Shown here in pieces: positions 23,001-48,375 of a stretch of 64,000 bases of DNA. Where the stretch lies: the NCBI GenBank assembly GCA_946965045.2, contig OX337240.1, forward strand, positions 1,674,001 through 1,738,000. The letters run 5' to 3'. This stretch comes from Epithemia pelagica. Its lineage: Eukaryota; Protista; Bacillariophyta. Numbering within the stretch: position 1 is the first letter of the stretch; the number at the start of each line of letters is the position of its first letter. Made by a program: the position numbers and the translations under genes. The notes under the pieces are model-generated. The model ran no database searches. It was not told where the DNA came from and saw only the letters and a program-made list of their open reading frames with translations.

Positions 23001-25697
23001 CTTGATCCCATAGATATCAGTAACCAGAGTATCGCGACCAACAAAGATTTGTGCGACTTTACCGCCATGGTCAACAGCAGGGGTGTCGGAGAAAACCGAG
23101 TCAGTAGCAACGGGTTCATGACGTCGAGGTATATTAAGGACCGGATTGCGAGCCTTGAAATGTTTCTTGAGGGTGTCGTGGTCAAAAGTAATGCTACCAT
23201 TACGTGTAGTGTGCTTGAACGTATCGGCAATAACATCTTCAGATTGCCAACCAAAGAATGGACGGAACTTCTTCCAGTCATACGCTTCCTGGTAACGACG
23301 GTGGACAGAGGCATGAAGTGTAGGATCATTACCTTCTGCGTCAGCATAGATAGAAAAGAAGGGTGCGTCGTCAGGTCCATGATCATATGGGAGATCCAAA
23401 AGGAGATTGAGGTTACAAACAACACGATCAGTGTACTCCCCATAGTTGTCATATGGATGGTTCGACATACTACCATCAGTCTTGACGTGTTTCCAATCAG
23501 GATCATTGTCAGAGGGTGTGGGAGAATACGAATGGTCCAGAACACCAGGATCCCATGTGTCGGGTGACGTGAAGATGATCTGAGGTAAGGTATCCATGTC
23601 ATCGTCGCTGGGGATACCCAAGGAGTGGATGTAGGCTAACCCATCCTTGATGTGAAGGGGTATGGCACGACCATCAAGTGTAGTGATGCGTTGTTTACCA
23701 TCAACTTTAACAGATCGTTCATCAACAGCAAGTCCGAAATGCTCGAATTGACCAGGAGCATGGATAGATAAGCCCTTCCCATAATAAGCATATTCATTGA
23801 AGATGCCGACAATAGGTCCATCATTGGTCTCAAACTTTGCGGCACATGTGACGACAGGAAGCCCAGTAAGTTCATGGTTATCAATACCCACAATAGTGAT
23901 ATGACGGCCAGTCTTGGAAAGGATGCGCATGTCAGAACCAGCAAGTCCTCCATTAGCACCACGGTCAATCAATTGATTCCCTGGTAAAGTAGATTTCCTG
24001 GAAAACAGATAGCGTGGGACATGTCCTGCTTGTTTATGCATGTTGGCTTTGAAAGTAACCTTCTTGCTTGTCTTGGACTTGGCGTTAGAAAGAACACTAG
24101 TCAGGTCAGTTGCCGGGTGATTGATATCAGTCGTCATGGCTTGGTTGATAAATTGTGTAACCGGATCTGAATCATCTGAATGCTCAGGGACTACGCCAGG
24201 TGAGTCGTCATCAGATGCAACTTGGTTGGGGTCAGGATCAGGTTCCGGATCAATGTCGAGGGCATGTGTTTGCACTGTCCTCGGTGTTGTTGATGAAGGT
24301 GCTTGAATCATCTTGTTATACTCAATGATCAACTTGCGATCTTCTTCAGAAAGTTTGAACCATAGGTCACGCGGTAGACTAACCTTGGACGAAGAGGATG
24401 GAGATTCAGATGTCGCTTTGGTGTTGTGGACATGATACTCCATATCATCTTGTGAGGTTATGTCAGCATCTGTACCTTGGCCATATAGTGATTCATGTTG
24501 TTTGACATGTCGACGGCGACTATGAACAGATGACTGGGTTGCTTGATCATGGTCATAAGCTGCGTCTAGAAGGAGACGGAAGTATGATTGATAGCAAAGG
24601 GATTTTGCACCGGATTTGGTGTTCACCACATTATCCAAGATCTTGACTCGGCGGAGATCAGGTACCTTTTCTACAGCTTGCATGAGGAAGGTCATCCTGG
24701 TATGATCAGGGATGCGATCAGACAATGTCACTAAATTGTCTAGCAAACGTAGCTGCTCTTGAAAGTGTAGAAGAAATTGACGTGTTGTTCCGCGCCATGT
24801 GTCGTCAAGACGTAGATTGGAAATGTAGTTGGTTAAGCGGAGGACTTCTCGCTTTGCTAGGTCGGATTCGGTATGCAAAGAGTGTAACTTCTGCAATACA
24901 GCACGCGCATCTTCATCATGTTCATGTTCACGTACATAGGCTCGACCTTGGTCAGTCTGAATGATACGGACAAGAACGGAGTAAAGAAATACTTGTTGCT
25001 CTTGAAAAAGTTCTTCGGCATACTCATCATCATGGGGTGGTGTGTATTTGAAATTCAGGACGTTGGATAGGCCTTGAGCCTTAGCTGTAGTCTTGAATAC
25101 ACGCCAGAATGAATCGTAGTATCGTTCATCCTTGAATACCTCGTATGCAGTTGCGTCGCGCTTAGTTCCCTTTCTGAATGCTGTAAGGTCTTGTTGAGAT
25201 TGGGATGCGGCAGTAACTGTGCTGACAGATTTCACAGATGACGGTGACTTCATTGGCGAGACTGGGACTTGACTAGGTGGTCCCTTAGAGAAATCTGTGT
25301 TGATCCTCCAAGTGTTGAACTCTTTCCTCGTTAGGTTCATCCAGTCGCTATTGGATAGCTCGTCTTGAATTTCATTGGTCTTGTATGTGGCCCAATAAGC
25401 CAAGAGCTTGATCTGCTGTCTTGTGGGGCCTTGTAGATCATGTGTCTGTTTGTTGACCTTGTATTGTGTCAGTTCCTTCATGGATTCCTCGGTATTAGTT
25501 TGCATATACGAGATAACATGGGTAATGTTCTCAAAACCATGGTATTTCATCCACTTCATTAAGTAGTCGGCCCTTTCTTTGGTGAAGAATTGGCAGACAG
25601 TAAATATGATGTGGTCGAATAGGTCTGTGTCCGAGACATTGTCTTGGTTATCTTCTCCCTTAGGAGTCGTAGGTGTCTTGGGTGATTGAGGATCCAT
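20010..25697 (-). CDS. Gag-Pol polyprotein (1895 aa)
   Basis: Protease LIDRGANGG; integrase ATDSVFSD...ISDG...NKAENRY; RT RHKARLVADG, GADIGNAYL, KALYGLKSSG, YVDDL; RNase H YVDANL, YGSEFVA, GDNRSV, NPADILSK. IN precedes RT (copia order). Confidence 0.97.
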   Translation of the reverse strand: MDPQSPKTPTTPKGEDNQDNVSDTDLFDHIIFTVCQFFTKERADYLMKWMKYHGFENITHVISYMQTNTEESMKELTQYKVNKQTHDLQGPTRQQIKLLAYWATYKTNEIQDELSNSDWMNLTRKEFNTWRINTDFSKGPPSQVPVSPMKSPSSVKSVSTVTAASQSQQDLTAFRKGTKRDATAYEVFKDERYYDSFWRVFKTTAKAQGLSNVLNFKYTPPHDDEYAEELFQEQQVFLYSVLVRIIQTDQGRAYVREHEHDEDARAVLQKLHSLHTESDLAKREVLRLTNYISNLRLDDTWRGTTRQFLLHFQEQLRLLDNLVTLSDRIPDHTRMTFLMQAVEKVPDLRRVKILDNVVNTKSGAKSLCYQSYFRLLLDAAYDHDQATQSSVHSRRRHVKQHESLYGQGTDADITSQDDMEYHVHNTKATSESPSSSSKVSLPRDLWFKLSEEDRKLIIEYNKMIQAPSSTTPRTVQTHALDIDPEPDPDPNQVASDDDSPGVVPEHSDDSDPVTQFINQAMTTDINHPATDLTSVLSNAKSKTSKKVTFKANMHKQAGHVPRYLFSRKSTLPGNQLIDRGANGGLAGSDMRILSKTGRHITIVGIDNHELTGLPVVTCAAKFETNDGPIVGIFNEYAYYGKGLSIHAPGQFEHFGLAVDERSVKVDGKQRITTLDGRAIPLHIKDGLAYIHSLGIPSDDDMDTLPQIIFTSPDTWDPGVLDHSYSPTPSDNDPDWKHVKTDGSMSNHPYDNYGEYTDRVVCNLNLLLDLPYDHGPDDAPFFSIYADAEGNDPTLHASVHRRYQEAYDWKKFRPFFGWQSEDVIADTFKHTTRNGSITFDHDTLKKHFKARNPVLNIPRRHEPVATDSVFSDTPAVDHGGKVAQIFVGRDTLVTDIYGIKSTKQFVNTLQDNIRFRGAMETLISDGGSSLISQKVKDILRTLLIGEYRSEPYHQHQNKAENRYQTVKRMTNALMNATGCPANTWLLCLEYVCDLLNHTSSPTHSGRTPLEALSGRPPDITHLLFFPFWDEVYYRVDPAEPNSGSYPSSSDEKLGHWVGFAHNVGDSFTWKILTQDNQIIYRSAVRRVESTTPNLRVDRPSGEDSSDQDDNDKQADTVFIRSDSEDPSKPMPTIDFDDMIGRTFLCDTEENGERHRARVIKRVIDLNEEATKQEERVKYIYRKTNSDVDEMISYNQLMEYIERDNQAQTSGDNLFRFRDVIAHQGPLNTTDPDYKGSKYNLLVDWETGETTYEPLSLIANDDPITVAIYGKKHDLLNEPGWKHLKRYVKTSKRLIRAAKQSRIKQVHHSVKYKFGFQVPRNYEEAVTLDKQHGNTKWQDATELELSQIQSYKTFKDFGKAIFIKGKVSNAPEGYHKIRVHLVFDVKHDGRHKARLVADGHLTKEPVETIYSGVVSIRNLRIALFLGTLNDLEIWGADIGNAYLEALTGEKLFIVAGPEFKELEGHILIIYKALYGLKSSGARWHDVLFDVLTDMGFSPSKADPDIWMRKAPGEDCYEYIAVYVDDLAIISTDPGNICKILKEKYNFKLKGDGPIDFHLGCCYTKDSDGTLVADPRRYIGKMMDTFERIFKEKPKKAKTPLIGGDHPELDDSELLDEEGTNHFQTLIGQLQWVITIGRFDVFTATMTLSRFRAAPRKGHLDRAKRIYGYLAHLPEGAIRFRIGEPDYSSLPTQEFDWTCTVYSNASERIPEDCPTPLGRYVTTTHYVDANLMHDIVTGKSVTAVLHLLNGTPIDWYSKRQSTVETATYGSEFVAARTAIDQITELRHSLRYLGVPIRERSYMYGDNRSVVLNATVPHSILSKRHHLLSYHRVREAIAAKYVAFYWKDGKTNPADILSKHWDFVSIWPMLKPLLFWKGEVQDLNKSNDDKAETTSCGEC
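20016..20023 (-). other. Polypurine tract (GTGGGGAG) abutting the 3' LTR
   Basis: Minus strand reads gtggggag|TGTTAG. Confidence 0.6.
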
Positions 25698-39734: not shown

Positions 39735-41414
39735 CAAAATATGGGGAGGCACAGGTGCACACAAAAGGAGACCAATCGCATCCTTGGTGTTTCAACCATG
39801 GGGAACAGACGGGGAAGAACAACTCAATCACGTTTCAAAAATCACTTTTTGGAAGACAACAAGCACAACACAAGTTAAATGAATTAAGATTATTAGAAAA
39901 GAAAAAAGAACGTTTCAACATTGTAGATCATCGTCAAAGTGCGGTTTGTATGCTCGAAGCTCGAACTCAACAAAGATCTACCCCCAAGCAGGGGTGAATA
40001 GTCGGGTCGCACATGTGTCGTGAATTCGAGGTGCAAAGTCTTATTCACCCCAACGGCGCGAGGGTCCAAAATTGGCGATTTCTCGACTTTGCCACAAACC
40101 ACAAAAACACACCACACATTCACCACGGAGCCAATCTTGAGAGTGTCATAACATCTCCCATGAACGTTCAATCCTTCACCCAAGATGACCAACATGTCTC
40201 CCTTGCCCCACCGGACCATCGTGAACCTGCGGTTGCCTCCGAAACCCGCCGCAACGAGTCTCTCCATGGTCTGCATACCACCACCAAGAACAACCACACC
40301 AACGAGACAGATGACCATCCTTTCCATCCATCCATGCAAGCTCTCCTTTTGATCCAACCATCCGCAAGCTTCCCTTGCACCTCCACAGACCAAATGGAAG
40401 CTTTGCATTCGCTCGAAACCACAATCAACCAGGCTTTTTCCGATTACAACGGCAAGACGACTCGTGCTTGGGGATTGTCTATTTGTTTGCTTATCACCAT
40501 CTATGTCATAAACTATGGTTGATTGTTGTCTTGTTGTCTTCGTCTTGGGGGAAGCTAGATGCAACAAACGAGAGGTGATTGCTGTGTGATCTTGGTGCTT
40601 CGTATCTTTGAGCTTAATTTGTGTCTTATCATTGTTGTGTGTGGAGAGTGAAGACCCCAATGTTGTTGTTGTTGTCGAGTGCTGAGGGCCTTGTTTTCCA
40701 TGGGATAAAGATAGGCCGATGCAATCAATGAAGGAAGGAGAGAAAGGAAGAGGGGGAACATCGTCAATGCCTGATAGAAAGGAATAATGGGTGAGAAGAA
40801 GGTTGTTTTGGGCGATGCTTCTGTTGCTGCCTACCATGGACCTTGGTAAGCCAATGTCAACCTTTCTGCACCACCATCAAGTCATACAGTCCACATGCGC
40901 CTTGTTTTGGATGATGGTGGCCTTTGGGCAGTGATGATGGGCCATGGACGATCGCATCACCTCCAGTGCCGTGGTGAATTTGCGAGGTTTGTGTCAAAGT
41001 CGAGAGCGGAAGGGACGCGCCGTGGGGGTGAGAAAGAGTTTGCACACCAGGATCGAATCACTAAACCTCATGACTCACCCCCGCTGGGGGGTAAACAAAG
41101 ATGGACATAGCGCTATTGTAGGTGGATGTCCATCCGGACGCATGCCGATCTGAGGGCGCGCGCGAAATCTGTTTTGGGGGAATGGCGGTCATCCAGATGT
41201 TGGTTGGTCTCACATTATTATTTGTCTGCGGACGGAAAAAAGACAGGTCATCATCAGAGCGAGCGTGACATTCTCTTTTTTTTGTCAAAGCAAGATCTCG
41301 TCGACGATCGACTCTCCATGGGACGGGAAAGATCAACACCATTCACATAAGCTTGATCTCAACTCGTGCCTCTCAAGTGACAGCTAACCGAAACGACTCG
41401 CCTATATCATCATC

Positions 41415-42026
41415 ATGGTCAAGACCAAGAATCAAGTACTGGAAGAAAAGCTGAAAAAGCAGTTGGATTTAAAGTACAGCGCAGCTTCCCGATTGTTGAA
41501 GGAAGCCCGACAAAACTTGGGAATTGGTGCCGAGGAAGAATTGACTCATGACCGAGAAGAAGAAGTATTGGACGAGGCCATTATTATTTATGAAGATGAT
41601 TTGACACCAGAAGAACAAGAAGCCATGAAACAGGGCAGTACCAGTACTATTACACCCCTGGCCTCCAATCCCAATGGCGGCGATGGAGGTGAACCTGTCG
41701 AAGATGAATGGCGCCGCAAGGCACGATTGGCAGCCGAACGACGTGAAAGGCAATGGCAAGAACAGCAAGAACAACAACGACAACAAGAGGCGGCCGCTGC
41801 TGCGGCTGCCGCTGCGCCTCCTCCAGGAAAGTATGCACCTCCACCCCCACAAGCCGCTTCACAGGAGCAATCGCCCATGCCGGAACAAGCCATCGAAGGT
41901 GGTGAATATGAGGACCCAGACATGCAACCAGTTGTGACTCGTGTGGTACGCAAAAAGGTGACCAAGGGCAAAGTGTCCAACAAGAAACCAGGTGAAGTAT
42001 CCACGTGTTATTGCGTCATTTTATAG
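41415..42026 (+). CDS. Small CaaX protein 1 (ends KKPGEVSTCYCVIL)
   Basis: 203 aa, clearly paralogous to 42954..43433 (LKYSxASRLxxEARQ; WxxKARLAAExRExQW). Confidence 0.85.
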   Translation: MVKTKNQVLEEKLKKQLDLKYSAASRLLKEARQNLGIGAEEELTHDREEEVLDEAIIIYEDDLTPEEQEAMKQGSTSTITPLASNPNGGDGGEPVEDEWRRKARLAAERRERQWQEQQEQQRQQEAAAAAAAAAPPPGKYAPPPPQAASQEQSPMPEQAIEGGEYEDPDMQPVVTRVVRKKVTKGKVSNKKPGEVSTCYCVIL

Positions 42027-42953
42027 AAGCGATATTCGTCAAGAACGGAGAGTCCCACCAGAACTCCAGAAAAGGTTTCCTGCTTGTCCAGGGGTGCCCT
42101 TTGTCATAATACATGACGTCTTTGGAGAGGATCGGGAAGGGTTTGAGGTATACAGGACCAGAGAGCGGTGGTAGCAACCGGTAGGGATATGGATACTATC
42201 GTGGCTCCCCAACTATATGATGATGATAGATTTGTGTGGGGGGTTTGTTCTGGATCATGTCAAGCCAACTTTCATACCAGGGCTGTTTTTGTTGTGTAAT
42301 TTCCATTTCGACTACATATTCATGATAAACTATGCTTTTCAATGCTATGATCCCATATGTTGTGTGAACAATGGTACTCATACAGAATCCACAATTTAAT
42401 GTCTTTTATTCATCCCAACAATGCTCATATAGGCAGTTCTTAGCAGAAAGAGTGATGTTAAAGCACATTGCAACAAAAGTTGGGTGATAGGCGTTTGTCA
42501 GAGCATGAGAATGTAAATGTGTTTGCCAGGCAGAACCCTTGCGATTGTTGCCGTTGAGTGAAATCCGTAAACCAACCATGTCTCCAATCTTTCTGCGAAA
42601 TGTCACGGACAGTGCGTCCGATGCCCCCAGCTTGTGCTCCTATTGCTGGCCCCTATATCCTATATGGAGCTGCGTCCTGCCTGCAAGGAGTAGTATCTAC
42701 GCTACCTTTCGGATCGAGAATCCATTTACTAGTAGAAGAGCGATCTAAAGGCGTTCAACTTGTATGATTTTGTTGGGATGGTCATCTGGTTGGAGCATTC
42801 TGGGGTCTCCCCACCCATTCACACAACGGACGATGACCACAATGACCAATCCCCAACAAACAAGCTGACATTTCTCCACATATCCTAATTCCACATAGTT
42901 GGTTGGTTGTGACATCCAACCTCCAAGAGCAATAACATCACCTATCCATCATC

Positions 42954-43433
42954 ATGGTATCTGCGTCAAATCGTGTCGAAGATCGGCTCAAGGAGGAGTT
43001 GAATCTCAAGTACAGTGGTGCGTCACGGTTGATTCAAGAGGCACGGCAAAAGGCTCCGGATCAGGTTCATGACGACGACGCCCTCATTCAAGTGGCGACC
43101 AACATTTTTCAAAACGACTTGTCGCAAAAGGAACGAGACGAACTGCTCGTGACTCCCGAGCAAGGGGAAAAGAAACCAGAACCCGAATGGCAAACCAAGG
43201 CTCGGTTGGCTGCCGAAAAACGAGAACAACAATGGATTGCCGAAGAAGCCGGATTGCCACCTCCCGAAGAACAGGCACCCAAACTACCTCCCAATGTCGT
43301 ATCGCAAACGGTTACGAAACGAGTGGGATCACAAGAACCAGCCGTCGTGGAAAGTTTGTCGCAAGAAGTCAAGTTGCAAGAACCCAACGACGAAAATACG
43401 CGTAAAACCACCTGTTATTGTGTCCTCATGTAA
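42954..43433 (+). CDS. Small CaaX protein 2 (ends RKTTCYCVLM)
   Basis: 159 aa, paralog of 41415..42026. Confidence 0.85.
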   Translation: MVSASNRVEDRLKEELNLKYSGASRLIQEARQKAPDQVHDDDALIQVATNIFQNDLSQKERDELLVTPEQGEKKPEPEWQTKARLAAEKREQQWIAEEAGLPPPEEQAPKLPPNVVSQTVTKRVGSQEPAVVESLSQEVKLQEPNDENTRKTTCYCVLM

Positions 43434-44065
43434 CACACACACACACGCAACATGATTCACCAAATCCCTACAATCTTTTTGATATTCCATCCAACAAGCA
43501 AGACTCCTGAATCAATTGCCCTGTAGTGCAGGCCAAATTGAGTTGAATATTCTCATTGACCTGACGATGGCAAGCTACGACGGGCTTGTTTGTACCATTC
43601 GTTGGATTGGAATGCACAATGACACCATACACTCTAGAGCCATTGCACACACCACGATAAGTGCCAAGCAAACCAAAACAAACTCATTCGGAAACAAGCA
43701 TTTGATTGTTGGTTTCTCGCTTTGAGGTCTCATTGGTTTTGTTCCATACGCGTGGTTCTTTGACGATGATTTCTTACCATTTTGTGTTGTAAAATAAACC
43801 AAACGAGTATAGTAGTAGAAACGAAACAAAAAAAGTCTTGCAACGGAGGCTTCCCATACGGCTCAGTGGATAAGTTATGATTCGTGGCCATTCGCTCCTG
43901 TCAAATATAGTTTTCATGTGGGACATTGGTTCAAACACAAGAAACAAAATGTTTTGGAATATCACAGTCACCAGGATCCGTCTGATCGGAACGTATTGCT
44001 AACGTTCTATTGCTGCATTTTAAATTAGACATGTTATAATTGTCCTTACAAAAAGTTCCATTTGG

Positions 44066-44929
44066 CTACCATTGGGCAATTTGATAATCGGCAAAGTATT
44101 CTCCCGTGGGCGGTTTCTCCATGGTGGCAGGAATGACGGCATTTTTGGCTCCCTCTCGTGGATCTCGGGGTCCCCGTTGACTCGTCATGTCGGTCTTACA
44201 GTATCCCGGACAACAACAGTTGACGGCAATGCCATTAGAGGCCAATTGCCGCGCCTATATCTTGGTCGCCGCCGTCACGGCCAATTTGCTCATGCCGTAG
44301 TTGGAGCTGCTCCATCCCTTGTCGGCATGGGTCCCATCTTGAACCGCGTCTTCAAAGTCTTGAATCAATTGATTCAATTCCGGTATCGTTAAAGAGGGAT
44401 CTTGAAATTTGGCTTGCAAGGCCGGAGAGACTTGATTGAGACGTCCCGCCAGGCTGGCGACACTGACAATGCGGGCATCTTTACCCTGTTTCAGCAAGGG
44501 AATGAGTTGTTCGGTCAAATCTGCCGTTCCTCGATAATTCACATCCAGCGTAGGCTTGGTTTGTTGGGCAAAGGGTGTCGGATCCGCTCCCTTGAAGGCC
44601 ATGCCCGCATTGTTGACCAAGACATCGACCTTGCCAAAGGAATCGCGAATGTGATTCACAAACGAAGTATGACTGTCCACATTGCCGACAATCAAGGGAG
44701 CCGACGAGACTTGTACGGGTTGTGACGACGACTGCAAAGAGGCCAATTCGCCTTGAATGGATTGGACGGCTTGAGCCGCTCGACTCGTATCGCGACAGCC
44801 CAACACAATGTGTTGAAACAACCCCGACAAGGCCAATTCCAAGGCAATAAAGTAGCCGATGCCCTTGTTCGCACCCGTCACAATGGCCACTCGACCCGTC
44901 GTACTACTCGAAGTCGCAGCACCGCTCAT
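44066..44929 (-). pseudogene. Short-chain dehydrogenase/carbonyl reductase (CBR1-like) with in-frame TAG at 44255-44257
   Basis: TGANKGIG, LVNNAG, YGMSK. After TAG the same frame continues ARQLASNGIAVNCCCPGYCKTDMT...EYFADYQIAQW to a TAG at 44066. Confidence 0.88.
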
Positions 44930-45575
44930 GATCATGACTCTGTCTCTCTTCGTTGCCTTGTTGCTGTATCAACGACAAGTGCACTGGAAGCAAGAGAACA
45001 ACAACGTCGCCTAAACAAGTTCGAAATTGTGCATGGAGCGCGTGATTTCTTTTTGCTTCTTTTGTGATCGTCTACCAGATGCGATCTACAAGCGACTAAA
45101 TCCTGTACGAGTCGCATTAAAGAGTCGCAGAAAATACGGATCCTCGAATGGCGTATTTTGTTGGGATTTTACGATATCATACCCAAGGCACTTGCAATAC
45201 TGCACCAGTTAAGTACTTATTGGGTTACTTAGACGCCCGACCGGCTCTCTGCTCGTGGGATCTCGGGACCCAAACTATCGGAAAAACTGTACAACCAAGA
45301 TGGACAAGAACAGAGTGGAAAGTGGAAGAACAGACGAAACGAACACCAGGATCAAGACCAGCCATAGCCCCCGTTGTCTCGTCTTTGTTGGGAGTGGCAC
45401 AACCAACAAGCGATTCTGGTGCTGCGATTGTGTCACAACTTTTGGTGTGAATTGACTTTGGTCATTGACCTGTTCCTCCCCTTTTCTTCGTGTCATCTTG
45501 CTCTTCTTGGGGTCTCCTAGCTGGATCCATTCTTTCCTTGTATTTACTGGTTCGCCATTCCATATCATCATCATC

Positions 45576-45929
45576 ATGAGTCCAGCCGATACAACTACCA
45601 TGGGAGTCGTTGAAGAATCGGACTTTCATCGTCGCATGCGATTGCAAGCGGAACGCCGGGAAAAGCAATTTGAAGAAGAAGAAGCGGCCAAGAAATGGTT
45701 TGAAGCCCAACAAGAACAGGAAAAGGAAAAATATGGCACCGTCTTGCCACCCGGTGCCCGCTTGACCACGACCATCATTCCCACCTATTCGGGTCATTCC
45801 ACAGCCACCAGTTCCACCACGTCCCGCAAACGCAAGACCCGGGTCTATGCCGACAATCCCAGTCGCAAGGCCCGAGCCGAAGATCCCAATGCGCACAGTT
45901 CCTCCTGTGAAGTTTGCACCATTATGTAA
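45576..45929 (+). CDS. Small CaaX protein 3 (ends SSSCEVCTIM)
   Basis: 117 aa from ATG 45576. Motif HRRMRLQAERREKQF. Same catcatcATG start context as proteins 1 and 2. Confidence 0.7.
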   Translation: MSPADTTTMGVVEESDFHRRMRLQAERREKQFEEEEAAKKWFEAQQEQEKEKYGTVLPPGARLTTTIIPTYSGHSTATSSTTSRKRKTRVYADNPSRKARAEDPNAHSSSCEVCTIM

Positions 45930-46836
45930 AAGGATCAACCACAACCAGAAGGGCCACCCATTTCGGAGTGACAATCACAAATCCAAGGGGGATTGGTCCA
46001 GTCTGGGCGTGTCTGGGAGTGTGGTGTGTAAAACACTGACACTCCTAGACCAACAACAATTCGTAAAAGACAAGTGTCTGGTTGTGCAAAGTCTGTTCTG
46101 GGTTGCAGTTGGAGAGGAGGAAGTGGATTCCTTCTTGCTCCATCCTGACATTTGCACAAGCCTTCCAGAAACGCTTGGAAACTTTTCGTGCGTTTTGTCG
46201 CATCTTGGTCTTTGTCGTTTTTTGGGTGGTGGGATCCGCTGTGATTGCATCCGAGTGGATCTGGTGCCTCCCAAAAGAATAACTATCACGTAATATCTCC
46301 TCTAATAATATTTTCATGTTCTAACGCACACACGCATTTCGATACGCAACGACATATGTGTGTAGTAGTACCTGTTTCTACCCAAAACATGTTTGGATGA
46401 TGACTATCATTCGAGCGATTCTCCTCTCTCGTTTTGTTAATAGTTGTCGAGAGATGATGGATGGAATGGTGCTCTTGTCGAATGCACCGCCTAGCTACCT
46501 ACCTAGCTACCTACGCCGTAGTCGTGAAAGAAGGTCCGCCCGTCTCCCGTTCCACGAACCTACTACAAAGGCGACCTTTCGACGACCAATTCGGAATCCA
46601 GAAGTTCGGACCGTTGTCCAAAACGGTCCGGATTCGGAACTCACACCATGACTAATAGGATGAACAGATACGACGGAGAGAGGGGCGAGATCTCGTTTCC
46701 GAGAACGGTCCATATGGAAAACTCGACTGGAACAAAAGAGGAAACTCGATGCTGGGGTGATCCAGAAGGAATGGTCTCATAAAAAACAAGAGAGAGAGAG
46801 TCAAAAGACGATAACTCGACAGTGACCGTACTCAAG

Positions 46837-48375
46837 ATGAACCACAAGAATCGCATCAAGACATCCAAACATTCAATGGCTGGATCCTTTGTCGGCGTCG
46901 TCATGATGAAGATGGCCTGCATGATCCTCTGCGGTGACTTGGTTTCGGGTGTGCCGCTCATGGAACTCAAAACGGTTCAAACCATGACTCCCTTGTTTCT
47001 GGAGGAATCCTCCTCGTCCTCGTGGGCAAGCCTTTCCGACAAGCTTGCTTCTTCTTCGTCGTCGTCTGATCAATTAGAAGATGATTCTCCTGTTTCCCCG
47101 TTGGTGACGTGGAGTCAATGGATCCACCCAGAGGATGCATCTCTGGAACACACCCTGTACGATGAGACCATGCCTGCTCCGCATTCAGGCATGTCGTCGT
47201 CGTCGTCGTCTTGGATGCACTACATCAAGCCCATTGGAAACATTCCGGTCGACCATTATCCCACCGACGAGAATCCCGACAAGATTCATCAAAATTGTAC
47301 GCATCACATTTTTTCCGTTCCCCTGTCGTTCCTGGACCAGGATGGTTCCACTACTACGCCAGGCATGACACCACCGACAGCTGCCGCTTCGACAACGACG
47401 ACTCCCATGGTACTTTTGGATGGAGACGAACCCGATACGGTGCATTCCATCAAACAGGGCGTTCAGGCACGCGTCGTTCTCGGCCAAGCCTTGGGACTCG
47501 AGTCGCTCTTCTCCCATACCATCCAGAACAAGAAGGTGACTACCACCACCGACAACACCAATAACAACAACAACAACGACAATGACGACGATAAGAATTG
47601 CTTGGTAGAGGATCTGATTCCCGACTTTGTGCAAGCAACGGAACCTTTCCCGTCCTTGCTTGCAGTAAATGCCATGACTGCAACCACTGTGGTGGATTTG
47701 GAATTGAAGCACTTTACCTGGTTGGTCTTGCAAGTGCCAGCCTCCTGTCACACAACGACGACGACGTGCCGTGTTCAATTGCTTGTGTACGAAGGCATGA
47801 TTACCCGTGTCCAAAATGCACAAGAGTATGAGGAATGGAGCAGCGGAACCGTGTGGGAACTGGATACCACCACCACGCATCCAGAAAAGAATGCTCTGAG
47901 CATGGAAACGCAATTTGGTGGTGCCAAGGTGTTGGTCATTATTACTTTGACGGCCAATGGTGTCCCACCCATGATGGGAACGGAACCCACGAACCGTGAG
48001 AAGGCTACTACTGGTTTGCGTACGCCAACTCCTCCCCCCGTCAAGGTTGTGAAACAGGCCGACCGGAACTGGGACGAAACTCCCGTGACCATGCTCCGAT
48101 CCAATCGCATCCATGATATCCACCCTCACGTCGTGGCTGTTCCACGCCATGATACCGTTCCCCAGAGCAACCATGACAACGACGACGACAACGACGACAA
48201 CAACAACAAGAAGAAGGAACAATTGTCCTTGGCCTGTTGTCCACCACCCAATGGATATGGGACCGATCGGACCTGTGGCTATACGAGCTTTAAACGGCGT
48301 GAGGATGTGGATTGTTTTGCCCCGAAACGTGCAGGATCGTACATTGTTACGGTCCCCCGGGACGCTCCCTTTTAA
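46837..48375 (+). CDS. Hypothetical, possibly secreted protein
   Basis: Long ORF with a hydrophobic N-terminal segment (VGVVMMKMACMILCGDLVSG), beta-like middle and Cys-containing C-terminus. Start uncertain. Confidence 0.65.
   Translation: MNHKNRIKTSKHSMAGSFVGVVMMKMACMILCGDLVSGVPLMELKTVQTMTPLFLEESSSSSWASLSDKLASSSSSSDQLEDDSPVSPLVTWSQWIHPEDASLEHTLYDETMPAPHSGMSSSSSSWMHYIKPIGNIPVDHYPTDENPDKIHQNCTHHIFSVPLSFLDQDGSTTTPGMTPPTAAASTTTTPMVLLDGDEPDTVHSIKQGVQARVVLGQALGLESLFSHTIQNKKVTTTTDNTNNNNNNDNDDDKNCLVEDLIPDFVQATEPFPSLLAVNAMTATTVVDLELKHFTWLVLQVPASCHTTTTTCRVQLLVYEGMITRVQNAQEYEEWSSGTVWELDTTTTHPEKNALSMETQFGGAKVLVIITLTANGVPPMMGTEPTNREKATTGLRTPTPPPVKVVKQADRNWDETPVTMLRSNRIHDIHPHVVAVPRHDTVPQSNHDNDDDNDDNNNKKKEQLSLACCPPPNGYGTDRTCGYTSFKRREDVDCFAPKRAGSYIVTVPRDAPF

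Follow-up and report, generated by a model that had tools for sequence, protein, structure and literature searches.

Three neighboring genes in the diatom Epithemia pelagica represent an unannotated family of small CaaX-tailed proteins, predicted to act as lipid-anchored adaptors

In a 64,000-nucleotide stretch of genomic DNA from the diatom Epithemia pelagica (contig OX337240.1, positions 1,674,001 to 1,738,000 of the forward strand; called the window below), three co-oriented genes, designated A, B, and C, encode small proteins that end in a CaaX box closely preceded by a further cysteine. Our analyses support the assignment of all three to an unannotated eukaryotic family with members in diatoms and environmental assemblies. 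We lean toward reading these proteins as small cytosolic adaptors, held at a membrane by a prenyl group and probably also by an S-acyl group, that would use a UBA-like head and a basic helix to recruit a soluble partner. Proteins anchored by a CaaX box and lacking a GTPase domain are already known as a kind. What is new is this particular family, its layout of head, helix, and tail, and its spread over 58 clusters; no description of it was found in Pfam, PDB sequences, the ESM Atlas, or the literature searched. A full-text literature search found no paper on the diatom prenylated proteome. The features of the three genes are as follows, in window coordinates.

41415..42026, + strand: gene A, 203 amino acids (aa), a single uninterrupted open reading frame (ORF) with the tail CYCVIL followed by a stop codon
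41415..41630, + strand: N-terminal four-helix domain of A (aa 1 to 72), UBA-like by predicted fold (AlphaFold2)
41709..41756, + strand: basic helix of A, W99 to W114, WRRKARLAAERRERQW, inside the predicted helix at aa 96 to 132 and fitting Rx5AAx2R
42006..42023, + strand: Cys-x-Cys-aaX tail of A, CYCVIL (X = L), with a polybasic stretch just before it
42954..43433, + strand: gene B, 159 aa, a single uninterrupted ORF with the tail CYCVLM followed by a stop codon
42954..43139, + strand: N-terminal domain of B, homologous to that of A
43188..43235, + strand: basic helix of B, W79 to W94, WQTKARLAAEKREQQW, with a weak Pfam SVIP match at aa 70 to 93
43413..43430, + strand: tail of B, CYCVLM (X = M); X = L in four orthologs
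45576..45929, + strand: gene C, 117 aa, tail CEVCTIM, with the shared motif near the N terminus, a disordered middle, and no head domain
45624..45671, + strand: basic helix of C, F17 to F32, FHRRMRLQAERREKQF, a match to the motif
45906..45926, + strand: tail of C, CEVCTIM (X = M); an ortholog on an ENA diatom contig (L003) ends in CRFLF instead

An earlier note, written from these letters alone, had described three co-oriented, uninterrupted ORFs with these C termini, a motif shared by all three, and an N-terminal domain common to A and B, and each of these was found as described. The program-made ORF of gene C opens at a TTG (45465); its start was set to the ATG at 45576 because the N termini of the orthologs begin at the corresponding Met. 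By pairwise alignment, A and B are homologous over their full length (33% identity, E = 2e-21), and the alignment of C to A and to B is confined to the motif (E = 6e-6 and 5e-4, respectively).

Several lines of evidence bear on whether these short ORFs are genes. A word search recovered orthologs of B (57 to 60% identity) from a Logan assembly of a sequencing run, an ENA assembly, and Epithemia clementina, together with a B-type relative at 41% identity that is a complete MMETSP transcript, and it also recovered orthologs of C and of A. In other diatoms the A orthologs are 184 to 258 aa long, and the C orthologs, at 114 to 117 aa, lie at the syntenic position. The gene order A, B, a short-chain dehydrogenase (SDR) gene on the opposite strand, and C recurs in Epithemia clementina (L004 and L005) and on the ENA diatom contig (L003). 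Codon comparison with the orthologs gave proportions of nonsynonymous differences (pN) of 0.17 to 0.28 versus proportions of synonymous differences (pS) of 0.65 to 0.82 across A, B, and C. Where the synonymous rate (dS) could be estimated, the ratio of nonsynonymous to synonymous rates (dN/dS) ranged from 0.09 to 0.19 overall: 0.12 to 0.15 for A, 0.13 to 0.19 for B, and 0.09 for C against Epithemia clementina. These codon-level comparisons indicate that A, B, and the short C are all under purifying selection. Contigs of one sequencing run, X4, cover the genic parts only (approximately 41263 to 42415, 42965 to 43431, the SDR gene, and 45737 onward), with the intergenic stretches silent; they carry adapter ends and have no joints inside the A, B, or C ORFs. 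This pattern looks like that of a transcriptome but is no more than suggestive, the kind of run X4 not being recorded and none of the sequencing runs being on record as RNA. Because the genes are syntenic, show low dN/dS, have a B-type relative among the MMETSP transcripts, and are covered in their genic parts by X4 contigs, we conclude that A, B, and C are real genes.

To delimit the family, a profile was built from 13 sequences and searched against 1.84 billion representative proteins. It retrieved 58 proteins, each standing for a cluster at 50% identity, at E ≤ 1e-3; 47 of these had E ≤ 1e-10. Wherever the source gave a name for a member, that name was "hypothetical protein." Pfam scans of A, B, and C (E ≤ 10) and then of 13 and 55 members (E ≤ 1) yielded no family at threshold. 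The whole-family profile searched against PDB chains returned just a designed helical repeat and a nonsignificant stretch of ataxin-3. In the ESM Atlas, the shape search gave template modeling (TM) scores of 0.27 or lower by query, and the feature search gave no usable match. The earlier note had proposed an undescribed family with no visible GTPase or other known domain, and the absence of a Pfam family at threshold, a solved relative, or a usable Atlas cluster bears out both proposals.

In the genome of the window the family comprises just A, B, and C, as judged by a profile search. Three distant members (P0013, P0021, and P0026) are solitary genes with unrelated eukaryotic neighbors, and because these stand alone, we take the tandem cluster to be specific to this diatom lineage. 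A family tree, made with the quick version of the tree search, placed A and B as sister clades (SH-aLRT, the Shimodaira-Hasegawa-like approximate likelihood ratio test, 94); the branch leading to C is very long, and the placement of C is uncertain.

Nearly all members of the family end in a CaaX box. Under the CaaX rule, X = L or F directs a protein to geranylgeranyltransferase type I (GGTase-I), and X = M, S, Q, A, or C directs it to farnesyltransferase (FTase). The boxes of A (CVIL), B (CVLM), and C (CTIM) all satisfy the CaaX substrate rule. Across the family, 57 of 66 sequences carry a canonical box, C-x-(I/V/L/M)-(L/M/Q/S), with the Cys four residues from the end. In these 57, I and V occupy a2 in 48 and 6 sequences, respectively, and the X residues comprise 33 L, 14 M, 8 Q, and 2 S. 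An additional Cys at −1, −2, or −3 relative to the CaaX Cys is present in 50 of the 57, and in each of A, B, and C a second Cys precedes it by two or three residues. The combination of CaaX box and extra Cys is near-universal, and the recurrence of the box in 57 of 66 sequences is far beyond chance. The family search that the earlier note had proposed for co-occurrence with CaaX thus found homologs that keep the box, not homologs that lack it. Since the box is kept across 58 clusters, a lipid anchor would be the defining feature of the family. The enzymes that would install it are encoded in the same genome: three Prenyltrans beta-subunit loci of any type (FTase, GGTase-I, or Rab geranylgeranyltransferase), two PPTA alpha-subunit genes, and ICMT.

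The canonical box is absent from 9 of the 66 sequences. Seven of these appear to be fragments, reading frames that run too long, or sequences with divergent C termini, and the C termini of the other two, P0006 and P0061, look genuinely different from CaaX. P0006 is the C ortholog on the ENA contig (L003:11386-11730); it ends in CRFLF, and alternative frames restore no CaaX box. Its lack of a box weighs against the anchor model, and either the anchor has truly been lost or the sequence is in error. The B-type member P0002, from a Logan assembly, reads approximately 30 residues beyond CYCTIL, an extension that probably results from a missed stop codon or faulty assembly and does not represent a real anchor-less form. 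The CRFLF terminus is also the observation that favors a different reading of the tail as a whole, namely, that the terminal cysteines form a metal- or redox-active CxC or are a chance feature of soluble proteins. However, a Cys placed exactly four residues from the end in 57 of 66 sequences, an aliphatic a2, and an X drawn from just L, M, Q, and S follow the transferase rule and not a metal-site rule, and the genome encodes the prenylation enzymes. We give this reading almost no credence.

The tails also bear on which lipid is attached and on what accompanies it. The earlier note had proposed paralog-specific prenyl groups, a proposal that did not hold up. The X residue flips among orthologs: in B it is M here and L in four other species, and in A it is L here and M in P0007, with some deeper clades uniform in X. 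Because the last residue varies within ortholog groups, the predicted prenyl type is not a stable property of a paralog. With respect to a second membrane signal, the note had named both a nearby Cys and a basic patch. The Cys is present in all three proteins; the basic patch is strong only in A, where the 20 residues before the Cys cluster have a net charge of +6, versus −1 in B and 0 in C. The polybasic stretch is likewise restricted to the A group (net charge, +5 to +6), and the family median is 0. The usual second signal in the family is therefore the extra Cys and not a basic patch. By analogy with H-Ras, RhoB, and paralemmin, this upstream Cys is likely a site of S-acylation.

Comparison with known lipid-anchored proteins places the family closest in tail design to paralemmin (PMC2148134). 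Both are hydrophilic, lack a GTPase domain or transmembrane segment, combine conserved cassettes with poorly conserved linkers, and have a CaaX box directly preceded by further Cys; the basic cluster upstream of the paralemmin box is shared by paralog A only. Paralemmin function requires the lipid anchor (PMC2148134). The likeness is one of tail design only, since Pfam Paralemmin (PF03285) matched neither A, B, and C nor the 13 members, and it was not among the best 25 of the 67 families listed for the 55 members. Paralemmin is an animal protein of approximately 42 kDa with two extra Cys, whereas the diatom proteins are 12 to 22 kDa, have a UBA-like head, and usually carry one extra Cys. It is general knowledge that the tails of H-Ras, N-Ras, RhoB, and TC10 likewise join a CaaX box to a nearby Cys as second membrane signal, and their polybasic stretch has a counterpart in A only. 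Unlike the Ras and Rho proteins, A, B, and C contain no P-loop GTPase domain (Pfam Ras, PF00071), even at E ≤ 10.

The N-terminal region of A was modeled with confidence as a four-helix head. AlphaFold2 assigned residues 1 to 72 predicted local distance difference test (pLDDT) scores of 84 to 96, with helices at 5 to 17, 21 to 35, 45 to 62, and 65 to 71. The domain alone, modeled from a 51-sequence alignment, reached a pLDDT of 86.7 and a predicted TM score (pTM) of 0.70. In an exhaustive VIA structure search, the top match of the head was the UBA domain of NXF1/TAP (Z = 6.9; 55 residues at 2.3 Å), followed by the UBA domains of Dcn1 (6.4) and Mex67 (6.2), RuvA domain III (6.1), and the UBA domain of TDP2 (6.0). 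Lower matches included the EF-Ts N terminus, FAF1, Rad23, Ede1, UBAP1, and p47, and UBA or UBA-like domains made up approximately 20 of the best 50. The predicted bundle superposes on these domains (NXF1 TAP-C, Dcn1, TDP2, Rad23, p47, FAF1, the EF-Ts N terminus, and RuvA domain III) with Z scores of 4.7 to 6.9 and root mean square deviations of 1.3 to 2.8 Å over 42 to 55 residues. However, sequence identity is 9 to 19%. Other results also limit the comparison with this fold class: all Z scores are below 8, a range in which, as the tool warns, a match may reflect just a common helical arrangement, and Foldseek searches of both head-containing models against PDB gave nothing at E ≤ 0.001, the domain itself scoring E > 1. 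The N-domain profile found chance-level matches only among PDB sequences. The Pfam UBA, CUE, and TAP_C families gave no match for A, B, and C at E ≤ 10, nor did they appear among the best 25 of 67 families for the 55 members. The structure prediction that the earlier note had suggested thus produced a confident four-helix head, which on the model of A we call UBA-like by predicted fold; we claim neither homology nor ubiquitin binding.

The second conserved module is the basic helix. Its consensus over 54 sequences is E-P-(E/D)-W-K-R-K-A-R-x-(Q/A)-A-E-(K/R)-R-E-x-E-W, with the W conserved in 47, two Ala in 51 each, the Arg in 50, and the Glu in 51, so that Ala, Ala, Arg, and Glu are each kept in at least 90%. 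In A the motif falls within the helix that AlphaFold2 predicts at aa 96 to 132.

Head and helix could together be read as a nuclear-envelope device, in which the KRKAR core serves as a nuclear localization signal (NLS) that, with the CaaX box, leads to the inner nuclear membrane in the manner of a lamin B tail, and an NXF1-type head contacts FG-nucleoporins or export factors. The top structural matches are indeed UBA-like domains with four helices, those of NXF1/TAP and Mex67, with 55 residues aligned on chains of 59 and 57 residues; the K-R-K-x-R core is conserved; and the pairing of an NLS with a CaaX box targets lamins. However, the core, unlike a linear NLS, forms part of an amphipathic helix that is itself conserved, has invariant Ala and Glu, and is flanked by Trp, and the Z values do not discriminate among fold relatives. 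The extra Cys, moreover, suggests S-acylation, which typically goes with residence at the plasma membrane or Golgi. We regard a nuclear-envelope role as improbable.

The presence of bulky aromatics at both ends of a basic helix raises another reading, that of a coiled-coil or calmodulin-type docking helix, binding either a G-beta-like partner in the manner of G-gamma or calmodulin by means of two Trp 15 residues apart. As is generally known, the G-protein gamma subunits are small helical CaaX proteins whose members differ in carrying farnesyl or geranylgeranyl. They differ from the present family in domain layout, and here X is unstable within ortholog groups. No Pfam G-gamma match was found for A, B, and C at E ≤ 10 or among the best 25 of 67 families for the 55 members. 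Furthermore, the residues between the Trp are Ala, Gln, or charged and not hydrophobic, and net charge is low in B. A docking helix of this type seems very improbable, more so than a nuclear-envelope role.

For the adaptor reading that we favor, the N domain of Cdc48/p97 is the leading, though tentative, candidate for the soluble partner of the helix, given the likeness of the helix to the VCP-interacting motif (VIM) of SVIP and gp78. The VIM occupies the N-domain cleft as a helix of approximately 18 residues (PMC10716044), and its consensus is Rx2h3AAx2Rh, of which the last Arg is pivotal (PMC5389986). Lipid-anchored SVIP relocalizes p97 to membranes, for which it needs both its anchor and its VIM (PMC3164199). 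Across our Pfam scans, SVIP (PF15811) was the sole recurrent match, found below threshold in 6 of the 13 members and in 8 of the 55 members scanned (best E, 8e-4, at E ≤ 1); among the best 25 of the 67 families listed, every other family matched two or fewer of the 55. B matched profile positions 8 to 34 at 14.3 bits. A matches Rx5AAx2R exactly, and the Ala, Ala, and Arg that are invariant in the family coincide with VIM positions i+3, i+7, and i+10 (consensus from PMC5389986). Of the 54 sequences, 38 have a basic residue at position i; Ala is found at i+3 in 51, at i+6 in 21, and at i+7 in 51, and Arg is found at i+10 in 50.

A genome-wide scan supplied a point of reference for this profile. 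When the SVIP model was run over the genome in six frames, other loci and not the A-B-C cluster ranked first. The best was a 267-aa ORF scoring 19 to 21 bits (L008:803-1606, corresponding to G000:C8:2541802-2542605, + strand), which has a PPPDE/Peptidase_C97 domain (E = 5.5e-30) and an Arg/Ala-rich tail that fits the VIM consensus. Its tail matched SVIP profile positions 11 to 37 at 19 bits, overlapping the part matched by B, and with its textbook VIM-like tail this ORF acts as a positive control for the profile. It may encode an enzyme of deSUMOylase-like or deubiquitinase-like type with Cdc48 as its docking partner. The genome also has at least two Cdc48_N genes.

These results can be drawn together in a specific form: the family would consist of SVIP- or gp78-like Cdc48/p97 adaptors, with a true VIM in the N-domain cleft, a head that binds a ubiquitin or ubiquitin-like ligand, and an anchor that places or sequesters Cdc48 at a membrane. 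Beyond the recurrent SVIP match and the placement of the B match on the same part of the profile as the canonical VIM-like tail of this genome, it is consistent with a common adaptor design, in which a UBA or CUE domain is joined to a p97-binding module, and the UBA domains of p47 and FAF1 are among the structural matches of the head. A lipid anchor combined with a VIM is, in addition, the design of SVIP itself (PMC3164199). Like SVIP (PF15811; PMC3164199, PMC10716044), the members are very small, mostly disordered, and predicted to be lipid anchored, with one conserved Arg/Ala-rich helix, and C shows the same minimal design. They differ in that the anchor of SVIP is an N-terminal myristoyl group and that predicted here is a C-terminal prenyl group.

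Several observations count against a Cdc48 link. None of the family members reaches the SVIP gathering cutoff of 27 bits, and the leading loci of the genome scan lie elsewhere. The family consensus deviates from the VIM at four positions. Most members have K or Q at position i, the first VIM Arg; 27 of 54 have Q at i+6, the first VIM Ala; the hydrophobic VIM positions are charged; and i+11 is Glu. Individually, B has Q at the first Arg, and C has H there and QA where the VIM has AA. Trp and Glu, which the helix conserves, are not VIM features, and a motif-only profile retrieved no VIM-bearing chain from PDB sequences. Charged helices rich in Ala, Arg, and Glu, moreover, readily give spurious low-score matches. 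Given this balance, membership of the family among SVIP- or gp78-like adaptors is doubtful, and the Cdc48/p97 link of the helix is best treated, on its sequence resemblance, as a lead that may well prove wrong. Slightly less probable again is the fuller proposal that lipid-anchored Cdc48/p97 recruiters arose in diatoms and their relatives independently of animal SVIP and gp78: here a prenyl-plus-acyl anchor would replace the myristoyl group or transmembrane segment, a divergent VIM would dock Cdc48, the UBA-like head would select ubiquitin-like cargo, and the head-less C could be an SVIP-like competitor of the full-length forms.

The general adaptor model that we favor can be set out as a series of steps. 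The CaaX Cys would be prenylated, with geranylgeranyl predicted for CVIL and farnesyl for CVLM and CTIM, cross-prenylation being possible. Removal of the last three residues and methylation of the new C terminus would follow. S-acylation of the Cys one to three residues upstream would then complete a stable two-lipid anchor, as in H-Ras, RhoB, and paralemmin. From this anchor, a flexible tether of 60 to 100 residues would project the conserved modules into the cytosol, namely, the UBA-like four-helix head in A and B only and the basic helix in A, B, and C, which would bring the soluble partner to the membrane. If that partner is Cdc48, C would be a mirror image of SVIP, consisting of a lipid anchor and the motif only, and A and B would resemble membrane-bound adaptors that combine a UBA or CUE domain with a VIM.

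Other features of the locus were recorded alongside the three genes. The earlier note had pointed out a shared start context, and CATCATCATG indeed occurs at all three starts: the window holds four copies versus 0.39 expected, and three of the four are the start codons of A, B, and C. The fourth, at 25025 to 25034, has no relation to these genes. We considered the shared context as a conserved regulatory element and rejected this, since the A, B, and C orthologs in two other diatoms lack CATCATCATG; it is treated here as a local curiosity. Directly after the B stop codon comes a (CA)n run (43431 to 43447). One sequencing run has an additional AC there, at 43432, and the repeat thus looks like a microsatellite of polymorphic length in the 3' untranslated region. 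Between B and the SDR gene, the stretch from 43858 to 44139 occurs in a strongly diverged second form in runs X2 and X3, with 20 to 26 differences plus several indels per approximately 600 to 700 bases and near-identical flanking genes; this form looks like a divergent haplotype. The SDR gene itself (44255 to 44935, − strand) lies between B and C and begins with a Rossmann TGxxxGxG motif. Its ORF in the window encodes 226 aa, versus 277 to 289 aa in two other diatoms, where its position is conserved, and it likely has a second exon beyond an intron. Runs X3 and X4 carry an in-frame 6-base insertion (GCGACA or ACGACA) in its coding region at 44724. Downstream of C, a 517-aa ORF (46822 to 48375, + strand) contains Ser/Thr runs and Asn/Asp-rich low-complexity blocks.

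Most known prenylated proteins are GTPases, and to our knowledge the non-GTPase CaaX families are few, comprising lamins, G-gamma subunits, paralemmins, some chaperones, and plant proteins. A family of at least 58 clusters with a CaaX-plus-Cys tail therefore provides a clean handle on the biology of lipid-anchored adaptors in diatoms. Its three short, conserved, and mutable modules (head, helix, and tail), together with the naturally head-less paralog C, make it open to dissection by simple fusions. If the helix does bind Cdc48, the family would represent a second, independent design of a lipid-anchored p97 regulator. If the fuller proposal of independently arisen Cdc48 recruiters is right, membrane-local control of Cdc48 could be tested in an alga with several Cdc48 systems.

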